Source: Oikopleura dioica
Taxonomy: Eukaryota; Animalia; Chordata
Length of the DNA stretch: 64,000 nt
NCBI GenBank assembly: GCA_907165135.1
Contig: OU015569.1
Location: 11,346,001-11,410,000, forward strand
Direction: 5' to 3'
The notes below the pieces were generated by a model. That model did not search any database. It was not told the DNA's origin and saw nothing but the letters and a program-made list of their open reading frames with translations. Each line of letters starts with the position of its first letter. Positions within the stretch are counted from its first letter, which is position 1. Below are positions 2,381 through 54,093 of the stretch, piece by piece. A program made the translations under genes and the position numbers.

Positions 2381-2689
2381 TTTTAGTTTCTCAAGTTTTT
2401 ATCCTATATCTACTGAAAACATAAATTATCTGATTAAAAATTTCAAATTTACATTGCCCGCCTAAATAATGAGTAATAACTATTTGGGGAATTTTTTAAA
2501 AATACTTGCGGGGGGCAAAAACCGTCGGAAAAAATCACTACCATTATTAATGAAAAAATTCTCATGTTCTTGAGGCTCTTGCTTTACTGATTCTCTAATT
2601 TCTGACGAGTTCATCTTCTTTATCAATATTTTCTCAGAATAAATGAGCGTTTTGGGAATTTTTTGCGTAAAACCGATTCTTGGTCCCTA

Positions 2690-7532: not shown

Positions 7533-8597
7533 TGTGGGATGACTAAGTTCGTGGGGACTAGGTTCGTGAGACTAGGTTCGTGGGTGGCTGGCTGGAAAAC
7601 GTGGTTCGTGGGACAAGGTTCGTGAGTTTTTGATTTTATATGTATATTTTTATTTATAATGATTAAGTGTTATTTATATGTATATATTTATTTATATATA
7701 TTTATATATATGTATTGTAATTATATGATCATATAATATAATATTGCTATCTAAATATAGGTTCGGGGGTTTTTGATTGGTTAGAATTTTTATTCTATAA
7801 GGAAAAAATATGTGCGACTAGGTTCGTGGGACTAGGTTCGTGGGTTTTTAATTGGTAATTATTTTTATTCTATAAGGAGAAATTATGTGCGACTAGGTTC
7901 GTGGGACTAGGTTCGTGGGTTTTGAAATTTTTTTATAAGGAAAAGGAGGGTGCGACTAGGTTCGTGGGACTAGGTTCGTGGGTTTTGAAATTTTTTTATA
8001 AGGAAAAGGAGGGTTGACTAGGTTCGTGGGACTAGGTTCGTGGGTTTTGAAATTTTTTATAAGGAAAAGTGGGATGCGACTAGGTTCGTGAGACTAGGTT
8101 CGTGGGTTTTGAAATTTTTTATAAGGAAAAGGGAGGTGCGACTAGGTTCGTGGGACTAGGTTCGTGGCTTTTAAAATTTTTTATAAGGAAAAATGGGTTG
8201 CGACTAGGTTCGTGGGACTAGGTTCGTGGGTTTCTATTCTAAGGCAACCATTGTTATTCAGCGCTAACATAGAAATTCAGTTAAAGAGCCTAGCGGCTTA
8301 TTTTGGGGGGTGGGAAAGTCATTTTTTACCATTCAACTTTACCCAATTTTACAACCCACGAACCTAGTCCCACGAACCTAGTCCCACGAACCTAGTCTCA
8401 CGAACCTAGTCTTCACGAACCTAGTCCCACGAACCTAGTCCCACGAACCTAGTCTTCACGAACCTAGTCTTCACGAACCTAGTCTTCACGAACCTAGTCC
8501 CACGAACCTAGTCGCACCCCCTTTTCCTTATAAAAAAATTTCAAAACCCACGAACCTAGTCTCACGAACCTAGTCCCCACGAACTTAGTCATCAATC
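7533..8597. mobile_element. Foldback-type element built from 14-bp GACTAGGTTCGTGG arrays
   Basis: About 47-bp terminal inverted repeats (gatgactaagttcgtggggactagg...), oppositely oriented internal arrays, ~60-bp higher-order repeats at 7815-8230, flanking direct repeat ccttcagcacg at 7522-7532 and 8598-8608. Confidence 0.85.
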
Positions 8598-8731
8598 CCT
8601 TCAGCACGAGTTACAAATTGAACCAACTATCAACGGTTTGCTGATGCCAGTTTCTGCTGCAAGCAGTAGCACCACCGCTGATGGGAACAGATTCATGCGA
8701 GTTTCGGGTGTTTTTTCCAACTATGCTGCAG

Positions 8732-18031: not shown

Positions 18032-18492
18032 CAGAGTTGCAAATTTGCTAAGCTGAGTGAGCTGAGCTGGCTGAGTGAGCTCAGCTCAGCTCAGTGATTT
18101 TGGAAAATGATCTGATCTGCTCAACTCAGCTCAGCTCAGAAAATTTTCACTCAGCTCAGCTCAGCTCAGCTCAATTATTTTCGAACATGATCTGTTCTGC
18201 TCAGCTCAGACAATTATCACTAAGCTCAGCTCAGCTCAATGATTCGAATACAATTTTACTACCAAAAAACAGTAAAAACCAGCTCAGCTCAGCTCTAATT
18301 AGGGTCCGCTCAGCTCAGCTCAGCTCAACTCTCTTAAACAAAAGGTCTGCTCAGCTCAGCTCCGCTCAATGACCTCTGAAAATGTCCAGCTCAGCTCAGT
18401 AACCTCCGAAATAGGCCAGCTCAGCTCAGAGAAATTTTTACTCAGTTCAGCTCAGCTCAGCTCAGAAAAATTAATCAAAATTTGCAACTCTG
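18032..18492. mobile_element. hAT-type MITE filled with CTCAG pentamer arrays
   Basis: 15-bp TIR cagagttgcaaattt, perfect 8-bp TSD ttctccac on both sides. Confidence 0.9.
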
Positions 18493-19302: not shown

Positions 19303-19995
19303 TTAAGAGAAATCTATGTTACAGTATCGGAGAACAACATAATTTCGAAATAGAATACGCTCTTCAAACTCCTGCCGCGCGATAATATGTCACCCCAGAA
19401 AGTAATTTATCAGCTGTAGTAATCAAAGCCTCGCAAGGATGTTCGACAGTGCTTCGGCTCCAAACAGAAGTAGCGGAAGCTCAACGCAAGATTACGTAGA
19501 GTTGCCGTTTTTTGAAAAAGCGAGAGAGAGAGAAAGAGATTTGGATTATCGTGTCTCATTACGCCAAAAATTGCCACCGACGGAGGGATTTTTTACACCC
19601 TTTTTTCTCGTCTAATTAATTACCTAGCAAACTCGTGAACAAAACGAGTCGTTACGTAGAGAACGGTCACGGGATAACGCCGCCAATTCTACTTTACTTC
19701 GCTCAAGGTGTTGGTGTCGGTCGTCAAGGTAATCGAACTGTCAAAAAAAAAATCTTGAAAAGGGGAAAACGCCACTCATGTTTTGGGATTGGCCCAGTTG
19801 CATTGAAACCGCCCTGCATTGTCTACTCATTTTCTTTTTCGGAAAGAAGCGCGAGCTTGATACGGAGCTGACACACGGACAATACAACAACAAGATTAGC
19901 GAGGCATTATGGTCTTTCTATCCTATTAGATCTTTCTTGAGGATTTATTGAAGCTGGGCACGGAATTCAGCAGATTTTACTTTCACCATTTACAA

Positions 19996-20233
19996 CTGGG
20001 CTCGGCAACCTGTGGAGAAAACCTGAGTCAGGGTCTGAAAGATCTATAATGAAAAGCCGCGTAGCGGCTTTTAAAACGAAGCCGCAAAGCGGCTTCGCCA
20101 GAATTTGTCAACTTTTGAAATAATGAGTTGGTGAAGCCGCTTTGCGGCTTCGTTTTAAAAGCCGCTACGCGGCTTTTCATTATAGATCTTCCAGACCCTG
20201 ACTCAGGTTTTCTCCACAGGTTGCCGAGCCCAG
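19996..20233. mobile_element. Near-perfect palindromic MITE, copy 1
   Basis: Arms of ~100 bp starting ctgggctcggcaacctgtgg; flanks atttacaa/atttacta (8-bp TSD, 1 mismatch). Confidence 0.9.
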
Positions 20234-20980
20234 ATTTACTAATCACGCTTGAATAAAGAGATATGTATCCGATCGCCTTCGCTTTCTTTTCGTTTCTTTT
20301 TTGGCAAAGGAACCAAACACGGAATTAGTATCTCCGAGGCATTCGGCGTCACGCACGTCTGCGGGGCCGTGGCCAACGTCGCCGAGGAAAAACGCCGCCG
20401 CTTTCCAAAAATGGAAACGCCGCGTCAGATGGAAACAATCCAAGAAAGAGAGAACTCAATTTCATGAGTGGACAAATGATAACTCCTCTGGAATCTCTTC
20501 TTTTCTCGTGTGGAATAATAAATAGCTCTGGTCTTGAGTTTGTGCCCAAAAATAGTCTTTTGGAGAAAAAGTCTCAAGATCGTAAACTTATCTACTGCCT
20601 TTTTTACGTTCTTTGTTTTATGGACGAGTTACAGTAGATGCAAGTTCCGATATTATCGTCTGTGGGAGCCATGGGCGCGCGTTTGAAGTTGAAGAGTCTT
20701 AGCATTGAAGTAGCGAACTTTTGCTAATTGGGCGTAACACGCGATGAAAAAACAAAAATGAAATTCTCGAACAAGGCCAAGCCGATCTCAGGATGCAGCG
20801 ATTTGTTGACGCGAATCGTTTTAGGCAGAACATTGCTCTCTTCACACATCTGTGGCCGACATCCAGAATTAATCTCGCCGCTCATGTGAAAAAGTGGCTT
20901 ATTCATGGGAACCATGTAGCGTAATTACTGTCTCTAGACAGCTTAGTTTCTTCAGTGTGAAAATTTGGTACAGTGGCGAC

Positions 20981-21223
20981 CTGGGCTCGGCAATCTGTGT
21001 AGAAAACCTGAGTCAGGGTCTGAAAAGGCTGAAATGAAAAGCCGCGAAGCGGCTTTTTTTAAACGAAGCCGCGAAGCGGCTTCGCTAATATTCTCATTAC
21101 AATCTATGAGAAATTCTGGGGAAATAGCTTCGCGGCTTCGTTTTTGAAAAAGCCGCTTCGCGGCTTTTCATTTCAGCCTATCCAGACCCTGACTCAGGTT
21201 TTCTACACAGGTTGCCGACCCAG
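20981..21223. mobile_element. Palindromic MITE, copy 2 (internally deleted remnant at 21364-21409)
   Basis: Same family as 19996-20233; perfect 8-bp TSD gtggcgac. Confidence 0.9.
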
Positions 21224-32395: not shown

Positions 32396-35300
32396 ATGGA
32401 CTATGTTATTGACGAAAGCCTGAAATGGCAGATTGTGCTATCATATCTCTTAGTTTGTGCTCTTCTCGGCCTGATCCTCCAAATTCGCGAAACGAATCGA
32501 ATTAAATCGGAGGTAAGTTTCTCAAATTGTATACTTAAAGTCATATATTTGTCAAGTATGAAATATACCAATTCGAGATGCATAAGCGATTTATGAGCAT
32601 GCATTGGCTATTTATGAGACAAATCAAAAGACATATCGGCATGTATCGAAAGAAGATCACTGACAGAGAGGTAACAGCGATGTAACGAATACAATAATTT
32701 ATTATTATCAGTTCTCAGTATCGATATTTTCTCAAAGATAAAACTATAATTTGATTTAAATTCGATTTTGTACTTGAACAAGCGGAAAAATAAAGAGCTT
32801 CCGCGAAGCGTTGATGGTTCAATCTTTCTTTGCTTAGCTGCTTGCTAAGTTACAGTTAACTTCTGATTTGTGTTCCTGTAAAAGCGATTGAACATAAACT
32901 CTGCAACTTGTACATTTTAAGCAGGAAATATCATTAATTTAGCTTTTGGCCGCAGCTGTTACCTTTGTGCGGCTTTTTTTATTCTCTCGCTGGTTTCAAC
33001 TGTGTTCAATTTTCATAATTTATATTCTTTTTTTCGCTGCCGCCGTTGAATTGAAATTGAAAATTTGAATAGTCAATTCACGCCAAATGAAAAATGGAAA
33101 TGTCAGTTTGTCGACACTGTATTCTAAGAAACGACTTCCTCTCTGTTTTGCTTTACCTTCATTAATTTTACCGAATAATATCTTCTGAATTACCGAACTA
33201 ATTAAATTAAAGTTCGACGATTATTTTTTGGTAAAATCGAAAGCAAAGCGAAGCAAATTCTCCAAGCCTCGCTTTCTGGCGAGTTCGCTAAGCGAATCCA
33301 GATCCCTACTTTATTCATGGATTTTTAAAAATTTTAAAGATTAATTACATAAGGTTCTGGTTAAAACTGTATTGAATTTAGGAGAAGGATGAAACCGATG
33401 ATGAGTTCTTTGAGCCAGAATGGATGCCGGAAGAAGCTAAGGCCATCGAGAACGAAGAGAAAAAGGAGGAAAAGATGGAGACCACCAAAGAGAAGTACAC
33501 CGAGCTTGAAGAGCTCAGCAAGACCGAGCCCATCTGGACGCGAAATCCTAACAATATCTCCAACGAGGAGTACGCCGAGTTCTACAAGTCCCTCACCAAC
33601 GACAGGGAAGACCACCTCGCCGTCAAGCACTTCTCCGTCGAAGATCAGCTCGAGTTCCGAGCCGTTCTCTTCCTGCCCAAGCGAGCTCCCTTCGATCCCT
33701 TCTCGATCAAGCTCTACGTTCGACAAGTCTTTATCATGGACAACTGCGAGGAAATCATCCCCGAGTACCTTAATTTCGTCAAGGGTGTTGTCGACTCGGA
33801 AGATCTTCCTTTGAACATCTCTCGAGAGAATCTCCATCAGTCCAAAATCTTCAAGGTCATCCGAAAGAACCTCGTCAAGAAGTGCATCGAACTCTTCGAG
33901 GAACTCGCCGAGGACAAAGACAGCTACAAAATCTTCTACGAGCAGTTCGGTCGAAACATCAAGCTTGGCATCCACGAGGATTCCAACAACCGAACCAAGA
34001 TCGCCAAGCTCCTCCGATGGAAATCATCCTTCGATGGCGGCGAGGAGCTCACCAACCTCACAGACTACGTCAGCCGAATGAAAGATGGTCAGAAAGATAT
34101 CTACTTCATCACTGGCGAGTCTGTCGATATTGTCAAGAAATCCGCCTTTGTCGAGCGTGTGACAAAGCGAGGCTTCGAGGTTCTCTACCTGTGTGAGCCG
34201 AACGACGAGTACTGCGTCCAGCAACTCCAAGAATTCGACGGCAAGAACATCGTCTCCGTCACCAACGAGGCTCTTGAGCTCCCCGAGGATGAAGAGGAGA
34301 AGAAAAAGTTCGAGGAGACCAAGGTAATAATAATAAAGTTATAATCGCTATCCACTGTAGTCTACTTTCTTGGACTGTCTACGAGTGATAGATACATATT
34401 CTTTAGATCTTACTTACTTGGACTGTATTTTAAGAATTTTTTTAGGACACCGTGAAAACTCCTCAACGACCCACATTCCATAAAGTTAAAAAACGGCTCA
34501 TAAAAAAAACTCCTGATAACGTTCCGAACGAGAAGAAGAAACCGATAAAACATTTTATTCGAAAGAAATCAACGATGCGAGAATCACGATCAGAAACGAC
34601 CTCGACATCAACAGAGCCAGGTATTATTTATTACTCATTATTTAGGCGGGCAATGACATTTAAAATTTTAAATAAGAAAATTTATGTTTCGCGAGTAAAA
34701 AATTGAGAAACTCACTAAAGATTCAGGAGACACGATCATCAAGCCAAAGCGTCTTCGACGAGGGGGCTCCTCGAGAACGAGTGGCCGGGATAGTGGATCT
34801 CGCCCAGTTTCGCCGGTTAAATTCGTCGGTGCAAAGCGGATTTCCAAGAAGAAAAACAGCAGCAGTACTTTGAAAAATGAGAACAGAAGGAAAAAATCAA
34901 CCAGTCAACATCGATTCCACAAAGTCTCTTCTGACGAGGACGACTTCATTATTCTCAAAGCTGATGAGTATTTTAGTCAGCCTTCGAAAGAGTCAGTCGC
35001 TGCTTCGTCACAATCGCCATCTTCGCCTTCGCCAAGTCCTATTTCAGTTTTTCCATCAACCAGCAATTCTGAAAACATACCAAGCACGAGCACGAGCAAT
35101 GACGAGTCGCAGTCGAAAAAGAGAGGGTCAAGAAGAGCTCGGAAAACAACTCGGTCAGCTTCTTGTTCCAATATTCCTTTTGCAATCACACAGGGAAGCG
35201 AGATCCCCCTTCCGAAGCCTATCAAAACTACGAAAAAATCAACTTCTCATTTGCGCGAATCACGGTCAGAGACAACCTCGACATCAACAGAGCCAGCTGC

Positions 35301-35493
35301 CCCAACGAATCAACCAGAAAACGCACCTCGGGTCGTGAGAACTAACGTCATCCGAAACTACGACAGTTCAGACGAGTCCCTGAATGAGGTGAGTTTAACA
35401 GCGAACACTAAAACAGGTCCGAAGTGGGCGAAGTGGGCGATTTTCGCGAGTCTTTGTTTTCTCATTAGTTTTGGACGAAACAAAAGTCTTTGA
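32396..35493 (+). CDS. Predicted chimeric gene: TM anchor + HSP90 middle domain + ZCWPW-derived disordered tail
   Basis: Exons 32396-32512, 32587-32670, 33382-34323, 34446-34620 and 34727-35493 join by GT-AG in phases 0,0,0,1 with no stops. HSP90 identity is certain ([30 protein letters not shown]). Confidence 0.6.
33382..34323 (+). CDS. HSP90: Cytosolic HSP90-derived exon (linker + middle domain only)
   Basis: Intronless match to the HSP90 linker/middle domain; no ATPase domain and no C-terminal/MEEVD domain; ~7-aa deletion after APFD. Confidence 0.92.
34630..35365 (+). repeat. Inverted duplicate of the ZCWPW-like segment at ~1730-2470
   Basis: Same exon ([45 protein letters not shown]) plus homologous upstream intron ttattactcattatttaggcgggcaatg. 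Confidence 0.9.
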
Positions 35494-50913: not shown

Positions 50914-53900
50914 TTAGGATTTTGAGGCTCTTTTGACTTTTTGGTGGAAGTTGGCCATTCTGATTTGCTTCTTGAGTCGGTCTTCCTCGATGTCTCGGTA
51001 AAAGGTTGATTCGTTTTCGCGGACTATCGCTTCCTGAATATATAATATCTCAAAAGCAAATATAACTACTAATAACTTACGTGAAGTTCTTGAATTTCGC
51101 CTTCAAGTTGACTTCTCAGCGCTTTTTTGACCTTGTCAAGCTGCCGCTTACTGTCTTTTTGGCTGGCTTTGATTTGCTCCTTCTGTTCTCGCATCTCGTC
51201 AGCCAGAAGTTCGAATTGATTGCTGTAGTGTGTCTCGATCGCGTCGAGCTCTTTCTGGCGTGCTTCATCCTCTTTTGCGCGCATTTCTTTCGCATATTTT
51301 CGCAGTTCTCGAATTCGCTCCTTTTGGATACTCAATCCCTCGTTGAAGATCTCTTTCAGCATTCTCTCCTCTAAAACACCAAGAGTTGAACCTCGTTTTG
51401 CTTGTTACATAATGCTACCTTTGTGGCGATGAGAAACGAGCGTTTTCTTGAGCCCGGTTTTGTACTGCTCGAAGTATCGCTTGATTCTAGCGTTGTTTTG
51501 GCGCTTGACTTGGACCTCGCGTTTGAACTGGTTTTCTCGCTCCTTGTTCTCCTTGATTTCGCGAATTCGCTTGTCAGCTGCTTCTTCCTTCGCTTGGATA
51601 TCGTCTAAATATTGATTTATAAAGAATTTTAATCAAGTTTCGTCGTACTGAGAAGAGCTTGACGCTGTTTGAGACTTGAGATTCTGTTGTTTTTCGTTCT
51701 AAGCCGCTGATCGTACTGATGCTGTTCCTTGTGCAGCAAAATCGCTTGCTGCTCTTGTTTGTCACAGAGTCGTTTAATCGTCGCCTGATCGAGTGAGACT
51801 GGAAGCTCATCAATAATTGTCTGTTAATGGATTGAAAAAGGTGGAATAGTCTTCTATGTTATCAACAAAAGGTGGCAATAGATATAGATTTCAAGTACAA
51901 AGCTATAGATCTCGGTCAGATTCAAACCATTCCTTTAACATATCTCCAGGACCAATGTTCAGTTGTGGTCTACGCACGACCTTAGTCCTCACCGGCTTTG
52001 ACACTTGCTTTGCTCGTTGTTTTTGAACCCGTGGTGCCGATCTACCAGATGGTACTGGACAAGGAGCACTATTCAAATCGACCTCTTCGATTCTAATAAT
52101 AGATATTATCACGAACAGAACCAGATAGAGTCTAACCTTGGGGATATTTCGGACTTCATCTGTTTGATTTTTTCTTTTTCTTTCAGCTCCAAATCAAGGA
52201 GTTGCGCTTCCAAGTCTCCAGCGTACAGTTGCTGCTTCAGTCGCTCAAGTGCTTCTTCTCGCTCGAGGACATCCCTTTTGAAGGTTTTTTCCGGACGCTC
52301 TTTTAGCTTTTTGCTGGTTCTTTTATTCGGATAGAGATCTTCCAGGTCGGTGCTCAGACAAAGATTTGCAGTTTCTTCCGAATCGGTTCGACTTAATTCG
52401 TAGATTTTCTTTTGATGCTCAAAGTCGTTTCTCGCTTGTTTTGACTTGTCGACCGTGTTCTTCAACGAGTTTAGAATTTGCGCGATAGAATCAGAGTCGT
52501 TCTTGTCCAGAGTCGGTGCTTGACCGACTCCGAGTTCTTCATGATCGGAAATAGCAAGTGAGGAATCCAACGAAACGTATTTTGCGGGAGTAACTGGAAC
52601 GGGCATAGGCGGAGTTCTCTGAGCAGGAAGCGGTGAAGATGGCGCGACTTCTCTTGGTGACACCGTTGTTGTGGCATTTTGAATTTCTGGCTCAACAAGG
52701 GTCCGTTCTTCTTCCTCATTTTCTCCGTCTTTTTCAACGATGGCGCTTTCGAATCTCTCAAGCGTGTTTGCGGTTGAATCTCGTTGATGCCTGAGTTTCT
52801 GATTGGAGACGGATGTCCTTGTGTCTTTGGAGGTTTCTGTCCACTCGACATCGTTGACCGTGAGATTGTTCTGCGAGACCATTTGTGGCTTTAGTGTGCA
52901 CTGATTCGACTTTGTTTCTTTGATGCGCGATTCGATTTTGCGCATGAGCGAGGGTTTTGAAGAATCCGTCTTGTGACTGCGCGATGAGTCGATTTGCTTG
53001 ATAGGAATGTCGACAGAGACGATCTCGGAGCCAGAAAAGGAAGAGTTTACCACTTCAGGGAAGCGAGATCTTGGACCGTCATTTGTGGAAATATCTGGAA
53101 TCGGACTGAAAATAAGGATTAGGATTGATCTCGCGATTCAAAATTAGAAATAAAGGCTGACTTTTCGATGCAACTCTCGGGGGCGCCCTGGTTTGGTGGA
53201 CCAGGACGTGGTATGGGCACAAAAACTCCTGATTAATCCAGGGGATGTGCTCGAATCCCGAGCCAGACTTGGCTTTGAAGCATAACTTCAGGTCAAACTT
53301 TAAAACAAACAAACTCATGCCGGCCCTACAAGAGTTCTGTTGCGGGTCCTTGCATCGATCGATGGAGGGAACTACAACAGAACCAACAACATTGAAGCAG
53401 CTTTAGGATCGTGCCCGAAAGGTCAGCTCGCGCTGACCGTCACACGGTCACATAAAAACCCCAAATGACGATGAGCTTCACCAGCTCGGGAGGTTCTTTC
53501 GGGTCCCCAAACTAAAGGGACAAAGGGTGATTACGCAGCCTGGCCAGCTGCGGAAAATCTAGGGAGTCCCACCGCCGCCCGAAAGTTTTTTATTTTAATA
53601 ACAAAGAAAAAGAAAAAACTAAGTACCTGAGCGGAAGTTCAGATTCCTCAAGCGCAAATTCGTGCGGCGTTTCTTGCAATCCAAGCGTGTTGCCACTCTC
53701 GATCTTCATCAATTCTTCCGTGTCACAGCTTTCTGTATTGTGTTCTTGTTTTTCGAGCAGCGATTGTTCGTCTTCAGAGATGTCTAAAACGCCAAGGAGA
53801 ATTTCAGCGAGATTGTAGAGACTTTCGTTGTCTTTATCCATCAACGCATTGGCGGTTATGTGGTCGAGTTTGCTCCCGATTGTCTCTTCGAGAGAAGTAA

Positions 53901-54093
53901 TGATGTAGCGAAGGCATTCATGGTGGCCTTTCCATTCTTCGTCTGGTACTACAGGTGGGTCAGAATCGTTTGTTACCGCTCGGTAAATCGCAATCAACAG
54001 CTCCGGGTTGATCTCAGCCGAGCTTTTCAAGTCAATAGCCACCTTCAATCGCACCAGAAGCAGGTTGTACATTGACACACATGACTCGAACAT
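50914..54093 (-). CDS. CEP95: Centrosomal protein CEP95/CCDC45-like
   Basis: N-terminal LDHITANALMDKDNESLYNLAEIL and C-terminal LKEIFNEGLSIQKERIRELRKYAKE..AIETHYSNQFELLAD match CEP95. Confidence 0.8.
53174..53585 (-). ncRNA. Putative structured RNA of unknown class in a CEP95 intron
   Basis: GC-rich; the two ends pair (53174-53185 with 53573-53585) and enclose at least 8 hairpins or helices; strand inferred from G-U pairs and a GCGA loop. Confidence 0.5.

Follow-up and report, generated by a model that had tools for sequence, protein, structure and literature searches.

Why does one intron of the larvacean Oikopleura dioica, set among introns that are otherwise tiny, extend over 521 nt, and what is the GC-rich block that takes up nearly all of it? 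The intron lies in a 64,000-nt stretch of Okinawan Oikopleura dioica DNA (assembly GCA_907165135.1, contig OU015569.1, positions 11,346,001 to 11,410,000 of the forward strand), which is termed the window and to which all coordinates refer. We consider the block, with a probability of roughly 0.55, to be a gene for a non-coding RNA (ncRNA) transcribed by RNA polymerase III (Pol III), retained by the host, originating from a short interspersed element (SINE) or a similar sequence, and independent of the intron in which it resides.

The host intron runs along the minus strand from a donor CAG/GTACTT to an acceptor TTTTCAG/. The minus-strand exon ends at 53627, the following exon starts at 53105, and joining them preserves the reading frame (splice sites and frame were read from the sequence). 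The exon upstream of the intron encodes the Pfam domain DUF5745 (E 3e-7), and the gene is termed CEP95-like. A minus-strand intron of 521 nt had already been proposed by a sequence-only reading of this DNA, and the splice sites, the kept frame and the upstream DUF5745 bear it out. A homology search for orthologues with the exon open reading frame (ORF) 53593-54093 of the minus strand gave no match; the host exons were searched separately, by reference. The unusual length of the intron would follow from the nested gene that it hosts.

The block can be compared with several homologues. An exact 21-mer of its core occurs in four JGI contigs among 241 million metagenome records, two of which (L001 and L003) represent one locus, while L002, L003 and L004 are distinct; the same 21-mer has no match in viral contig and genome contig collections. 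An orthologous locus is contained in X5, a DNA sequencing run of a related organism. The following parts were delineated:

53106 to 53626, minus strand: intron of the DUF5745-bearing, CEP95-like host gene (donor and acceptor, frame continuity, DUF5745), with the putative RNA gene nested antisense inside it
53140 to 53173, plus strand: conserved upstream region, putatively the promoter, alignable to L003 and L004 (flanks beyond it unrelated)
53148 to 53155, plus strand: TATA-like sequence AAATAAAG within the conserved upstream region
53163 to 53168, plus strand: T-run/CG motif within the conserved upstream region
53174 to 53590, plus strand: predicted Pol III transcript of about 410-417 nt (fold z -4.9, homologues of 387-415 nt with the same ends, plus-strand wobble pattern)
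53174 to 53185, plus strand: 5' strand of the terminal helix P1, partner 53573-53585 (minimum free energy (MFE) fold and homologues)
53183 to 53209, plus strand: hairpin H1 of 9 bp, its 5' strand and loop containing the A box at 53189-53199 (A box match and conserved pairing)
53214 to 53253, plus strand: two-tier hairpin H2, whose 3' strand overlaps the B box at 53248-53258 (compensatory pairing and B box match)
53259 to 53406, plus strand: variable middle with local hairpins (e.g., 53334-53383), unalignable to L003 and L004 and nearly identical in the X5 orthologue
53407 to 53449, plus strand: hairpin adjoining the core, present in every homologue with a different sequence each time
53454 to 53510, plus strand: core of 57 nt (49/57 columns invariant in four homologues)
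53454 to 53472, plus strand: single-stranded, A-rich stretch within the core
53473-82/53488-96, plus strand: core hairpin of 9 bp, extended by 53469-71/53499-501 and followed by 53497-53510 (12 pairs, 100% paired)
53517 to 53570, plus strand: three-tier 3' hairpin (outer tier 53517-21/53566-70, middle tier 53525-28/53557-60, inner tier 53534-39/53547-52)
53573 to 53585, plus strand: 3' strand of P1 (MFE fold and homologues)
53586 to 53596, plus strand: predicted Pol III terminator, T6 A T4, directly after P1 (sequence; T4-T5 in the corresponding position of L002, L003 and L004)

The block folds far better than expected by chance. On the plus strand, positions 53176-53592 reach an MFE of -159 kcal/mol, compared with -129 +/- 6 kcal/mol for dinucleotide shuffles (z -4.9), and the centroid is nearly identical to the MFE structure; for the minus strand, too, the fold is better than that of its shuffles (z -3.3). 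The homologues L003 and L004 behave likewise (z -4.0 and -5.2). The ends of the unit are strongly conserved: the P1 strands CUYUCG and CGAAAG are invariant, and the pair that follows is G-C in the window and G-U in L003 and L004. The 5' end reads CUYUCGGGG in the homologues, and the 3' end consists of CGAAAG followed immediately by T4-T6, the sequence of the 3' region being variable.

Within this frame the individual domains retain their pairing while their sequences change. In the 5' domain (H1 and H2) 95% of alignment cells are paired, compared with 29-43% when the partners are slid, and three pairs have changed on both sides; these values come from a plain MAFFT alignment that was not fitted to structure. 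In the 3' domain, on an alignment that was so fitted, 88% of cells are paired versus 34-49% after sliding, and the covariation score exceeds that of 500/500 shuffles. The three-tier 3' hairpin has the same architecture and largely different stem sequences in all four homologues, and in the window all six pairs of the inner tier differ from the other three with pairing retained. The model-based alignment left the 3' hairpin of the window out of register, and the stem replacements were counted by a hand-made script. Contig ends of X5 paralogues show further stem replacements, one of them retaining the H2 loop unchanged. Upstream of the core, a middle region of about 200 nt is unalignable among the homologues, and an X5 paralogue carries a different 6-bp hairpin at the position of 53407-53449, directly before the core. 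The core itself contains a run of 28 nt that is identical in all four homologues.

The pattern of substitutions also assigns the strand. Five pairs of the core hairpin vary, all on one side only and exclusively from C-G to U-G or from A-U to G-U. Because such changes yield wobble pairs in a plus-strand RNA and would yield A-C mismatches in a minus-strand one, and because the MFE of the sense strand lies below that of the antisense strand by 5 (window), 10 (L003) and 13 (L004) kcal/mol, the RNA is read as plus-sense. The sequence-only reading had assigned most G-U pairs to the minus strand, which is wrong: the plus strand has the lower MFE in all three full-length sequences. Several of its other structural proposals hold. 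The block does fold better than shuffled controls, and the terminal pairing 53174-85/53573-85 as well as the hairpins 53187-92/53200-05, 53334-42/53375-83, 53421-27/53432-38 and 53535-39/53547-51 are part of the MFE fold and are conserved wherever homologues align. The proposed long-range helix 53215-20/53411-16 competes with the conserved two-tier hairpin 53214-53253 and its compensatory changes, and the helix 53503-07/53517-21 conflicts with the conserved three-tier hairpin 53517-53570. The short pairing 53473-77/53484-88 is better described as the 9-bp hairpin 53473-82/53488-96, in which the five variable pairs are all still paired, and a switch-like pairing of 53156-66 with 53417-27 would use bases upstream of the predicted transcript.

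Two additional contacts within the RNA deserve mention. The H1 loop (53192-53199) might form a tertiary pairing with the core (53459-53465), where a G faces a C in the window and in L003 and an A faces a U in L004, a single compensatory event. In addition, RNAalifold favours pairing of 53180-53185, a G-run after P1, with the invariant core motif GUCCCC at 53503-53508; this helix contains an A-U pair in L003 and L004 and a G-U pair in the window, and it competes with the P1 extension of the sequence-only reading.

The 5' 90 nt harbour matches to a tRNA-type A box (TRGCNNAGTGG) and B box (GGTTCGANNCC), located at +16 and +75-78 relative to the conserved 5' end and spaced 48-51 nt apart. Their agreement with the consensus is as follows, together with the number of shuffled sequences that score as well:

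L004: A box 9/9, B box 8/9; shuffles as good 0/2000
L003: A box 8/9, B box 8/9; shuffles as good 0/2000
Window: A box 7/9, B box 7/9; shuffles as good 17/2000

A cloverleaf tRNA was found neither by ARAGORN nor by the Rfam tRNA model, the boxes lying inside other helices, and the element is not regarded as a tRNA. The TATA-like box lies about 25-30 nt upstream of the predicted start, approximately 36-45 nt of upstream sequence are conserved between copies, and an X5 paralogue contig retains a ATAAGCATGA motif directly ahead of 53172. The conserved upstream stretch would represent promoter rather than transcript, because the T5 that L003 and L004 carry there should stop Pol III. At the other end, the T-run at 53586, already suspected to be a Pol III terminator, is indeed present, and in L002, L003 and L004, too, the conserved end is followed by a T-run. 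Judged by its sequence, the arrangement of A and B boxes, upstream TATA-like box and terminal T-run corresponds to a Pol III gene with a hybrid promoter, whose transcript would start at 53172-53180 and end in the terminal T-run.

The flanks of the predicted transcript show a further peculiarity. The T-run just before it (53163-53168) and an A-run past the terminator (53605-53616) are mutually complementary, and both are conserved wherever the flank is available (window, L003, L004 and L002). The pair could act as insulating terminators for both strands, or form an extra stem in read-through or host transcripts. On the minus strand, a T5 run at 53223-53227 behind a small hairpin would stop Pol III.

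The homologues delimit the unit. BLAST shows that the window shares the element alone with the metagenome contigs, and neither host exons nor flanks. Between L003 and L004 the similarity is confined to 468 nt (78% identity); the homology spans the unit plus about 36-45 nt upstream and about 15-25 nt past the terminator. These contigs are considered animal, since L004 adjoins an exon with EGF repeats; a homology search with a spurious ORF across the L004 core gave no match. The copies lie outside CEP95 introns and in either orientation relative to neighbouring ORFs, and L002 joins the common core and tail to another 5' part. No second copy was found in the 64-kb window, either by a covariance model of the 3' domain or by a search for the core with 3 mismatches.

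Public sequencing runs of 12 studies contain parts of the stretch, including marine metagenomes and three metatranscriptome studies, and four of these runs were aligned to 52900-53900. In two aligned metatranscriptome runs, contigs cover only 53440-53583 and stop short of the flanks. X5 yields, besides the orthologous locus, extra short contigs in other contexts over 53172-53211, 53251-53289, 53444-53511 and 53546-53591. The core is present in about 8 such further contigs and head modules in 1-2 more; the depth over the core (about 430-500, compared with a baseline of 47) implies roughly 8 more copies. The element is thus one member of a small larvacean-specific multi-copy family, in which the core is common and other modules differ.

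The orthologous locus in X5 allows the individual copy to be assessed. Its divergence from the window is distributed as follows:

RNA, 53174-53492: 12 substitutions listed (17 at most) in 319 nt, 4-5%, no indels
Flanking intron: 18 substitutions (26%) in 70 nt, 9 indels
Exons: 2-5% substitutions

RNA and flanking intron differ in divergence with a Fisher p of 8e-8 to 2e-6. Eight of the RNA changes fall into a 45-nt patch at 53396-53440 (18% diverged), and the other 274 nt are diverged by 1.5-3.3%. The locus is therefore under constraint comparable to that of exons, as a neutrally decaying insertion would diverge like its flanks.

Taken together, the proposed scheme is an independent plus-strand gene at 53140-53596, antisense to the host intron. 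Pol III would start at about 53172-53180, directed by the A box (53189-53199) and the B box (53248-53258) and aided by the TATA-like box, and would terminate in the T6 run at 53586. The resulting RNA of about 410 nt would close via its terminal helix; two 5' hairpins would form over the promoter boxes, followed by the variable middle, the nearly invariant 57-nt core and the three-tier 3' hairpin. The several dispersed family members and the tRNA-type head make a SINE-like origin likely, the family having probably arisen from a tRNA-headed SINE. As the copy is under purifying selection, it is read as a host-retained, trans-acting RNA, in which the invariant core might serve as a protein-binding or catalytic platform. 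The proposal of host retention builds on the conserved non-transcribed promoter, the lack of any visible tail or duplication, the low copy number and the constraint on the locus.

A number of points weigh against this proposal. The tRNA-type head, the dispersed partial copies and the differences between modules are also typical of a SINE family, and the window's own A and B boxes are the weaker ones, at 7/9 each. The covariation statistics are thin, with three full-length sequences and one partial, and the alignment of the 3' domain was fitted to the structure model. Contigs from RNA libraries may contain DNA, and the only raw RNA run that was aligned, an oligo-dT library of a diverged lineage, contributes 13 reads.

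The strongest competitor, which is possible though clearly the less probable explanation, is an ordinary tRNA-derived SINE copy, or source gene, that landed in the CEP95-like intron and lacks a host function. According to this explanation, structure and conserved core serve retrotransposition, through recognition by the reverse transcriptase of a long interspersed element (LINE) or of a Penelope element. SINEs are known in larvaceans, as PMC8008620 mentions with reference to Naville 2019; in O. dioica they account for <0.1% of the OKI2018_I69 assembly and 0.6% of OdB3, and in other larvaceans they predominate (PMC8008620). The explanation would account for the tRNA-like head with its A and B boxes, the further core and head contigs of X5 and the composite L002. 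The conserved, non-transcribed 36-45 nt upstream, with TATA-like box and T5, speak against it, since RNA-mediated copying into unrelated contexts would leave such a sequence behind. An A-rich or simple-repeat tail before the terminator was not seen by eye at any of the four loci with a 3' end, where the 3' strand of P1 is followed directly by T4-T6, and the two RNA ends pair with each other. Inspection by eye of the homology borders of the window, L003 and L004 revealed no convincing target-site duplications or terminal inverted repeats. Exact matches to the core 21-mer are as rare as stated above. Finally, the divergence of the orthologous copy is 5-7x below that of the flanking intron; selection that acts on a mobile element at the level of its family fails to explain this. 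The sequence-only reading had named many dispersed copies with target-site duplications as the mark of a transposon: several dispersed members and a tRNA-type head were indeed found, but neither target-site duplications nor an A-tail are visible by eye, and the locus is constrained.

The closest relatives in terms of design are tRNA-derived SINEs with a conserved central domain, i.e., the CORE-, V- and Deu-SINE types. The element resembles them in its A/B-box head joined to an unrelated body, its near-invariant central block, its differing heads and its dispersed copies. Unlike them, it has a terminal helix directly before the terminator, no A-rich or repeat tail and no duplication seen, and it combines a conserved non-transcribed promoter with low copy number and purifying selection at the orthologous locus. 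The evolutionary route that we propose has precedents in BC1, BC200 and 4.5SH/4.5SI, Pol III RNAs that go back to retroposons of the tRNA or 7SL type and that the host kept as ncRNAs; in contrast to the element, these are mammalian and 90-200 nt long, and their sequences are unrelated to it. Vault RNAs, which are Pol III transcripts of about 90-140 nt with A and B boxes, upstream TATA-type elements and paired ends, share the hybrid promoter, the terminal stem next to a U-run, the variable interior and the few paralogues per genome. A vault RNA was nevertheless rejected: the boxes and the terminal stem are present, but the unit measures 387-417 nt, with about 330 nt after the B box compared with about 15-20 nt in vault RNAs, and the Rfam Vault model gave no match.

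It is very unlikely that the element is a highly diverged version of a known essential Pol III RNA, of which 7SK would be the best candidate and RNase P or MRP RNA the next. A homology search for 7SK in O. dioica found none (PMC5006418), and the size of about 410 nt, the Pol III-type U-run end and the upstream TATA-like box would suit the missing RNA. The 5' hairpin of 7SK, with its repeated GAUC motif, binds HEXIM (PMC2995076, PMC5389472); the element lacks a conserved GAUC/GAUC hairpin, and GAUC occurs at non-homologous places in the window, L003 and L004. Moreover, the 3' end of the element is a strand of the long-range terminal helix rather than a local 3'-terminal hairpin as in 7SK, where LARP7 binds that hairpin and the U-tail; 7SK associates with HEXIM, LARP7 and MePCE. 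A tRNA-type internal promoter and a multi-copy family with differing modules are unexpected for 7SK, RNase P and MRP RNA alike. Rfam searches at gathering thresholds over the whole window, and down to E=10 on the element and two homologues alone, returned only noise, without a match to 7SK, Arthropod_7SK, RNaseP_nuc, RNase_MRP or SRP; the absence of an Rfam family agrees with the sequence-only reading.

For RNase P, the core weakly resembles CR-V (7/9 specified positions of a consensus), which is a lead only. In RNase P and MRP RNAs, CR-V is located near the 3' end and forms the P4 pseudoknot with CR-I. In the element, about 130 nt separate the CR-V-like stretch from the 3' end, and by inspection the candidate P4 pairing is not kept in the window. 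In a survey that included RNase P and MRP, the only RNAs listed as missing from O. dioica are 7SK and the lost minor-spliceosome snRNAs (PMC5006418), which implies that the RNase P and MRP RNAs were found. Neither is supported as the identity of the element: the models give no match at E<=10, the candidate CR-I/CR-V pairing is not kept across homologues, and the same holds for a P4-like helix between the core and the GAAAG(Y)UC stretch of H2.

Three further candidates were considered and set aside. The layout of enclosing helix, hairpin, single strand, hairpin and long 3' hairpin is reminiscent of ciliate telomerase RNA. However, the telomere repeat of O. dioica is TTAGGG (PMC8008620), the RNA contains by eye no permuted CCCUAA stretch of template length (about 1.5 telomere repeats), the single-stranded core stretch varies among homologues (CCCC, CCGC, CCGU), and Rfam reports no telomerase family; a telomerase RNA was rejected on these grounds. 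An SRP RNA, recognisable by Alu-domain loops and helix 8 motifs, is not indicated, as no SRP model matches the element or the two homologues at E<=10. Homologues contain the hammerhead motif CUGACGA, but GAAA is missing after the next helix, and the window lacks the C.

A cis-acting, minus-strand pre-mRNA structure that loops out or regulates the unusually long intron is the least probable explanation and very unlikely. In its favour, the block ends pair, the upstream U-run and downstream A-run could extend the stem on either strand, and the minus strand reaches z -3.3. Against it, the homologues lie outside CEP95 introns in either orientation, the one-sided changes would leave A-C mismatches in a minus-strand RNA, both promoter and terminator show conservation, and the minus strand carries a T5 run inside the element (irrelevant, though, for Pol II). 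The sequence-only reading had offered two interpretations and did not include the A and B boxes or the family. Its new or highly diverged ncRNA stands, given conservation, structure, Pol III signals and the absence of an Rfam family; its splicing-control structure is not supported, because the homologues come without CEP95 exons, the sense is opposite to that of the host, and promoter and terminator are conserved.

Elsewhere, the window harbours several repeats. Dense arrays of a 14-nt unit with a higher-order period of about 62 nt occupy 7538-8608 in two blocks of opposite orientation, which form inverted repeats with arms up to 100 nt. A foldback at 19991-20238 has 110-nt arms with 96% complementarity, separated by 28 nt; a related one at 20981-21221 has 80-nt arms at 93%, and both resemble copies of a miniature inverted-repeat transposable element or foldback element. 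The segments 1721-2387 and 34714-35371 are an inverted duplication of about 660 nt with 92% identity, 32 kb apart, and CAGCT-type simple repeats broken by short spacers extend over 18058-18480. On the metagenome contig that bears the homologue L003, positions 2398-2473 (minus strand) show a weak box C/D snoRNA-like match to the SNORD5 model at 21 bits and E 6.6, in which the C and D boxes can be recognised.

Among animal genomes, that of O. dioica is one of the most reduced and fastest-evolving, and little is known about its set of ncRNAs. The locus described here adds a conserved, structured and probably abundant predicted Pol III RNA that was missed by annotation and by Rfam, and it does so in concrete terms, with predicted ends, promoter boxes, core and helices. 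More tentatively, it may belong to an undescribed family of larvacean RNAs, abundant Pol III products about 300-410 nt long that are selected by the host at individual loci and act as a new ribonucleoprotein (RNP) scaffold or ribozyme-like RNA. Such RNAs might, equally tentatively, carry a tRNA-derived promoter head within a closed, multi-domain fold around an almost invariant 57-nt core. If this is true, they would perhaps fill a role left open in the reduced genome, such as that of the undetected 7SK. The element would represent either a host RNA that began as a SINE or a new component of an RNP.

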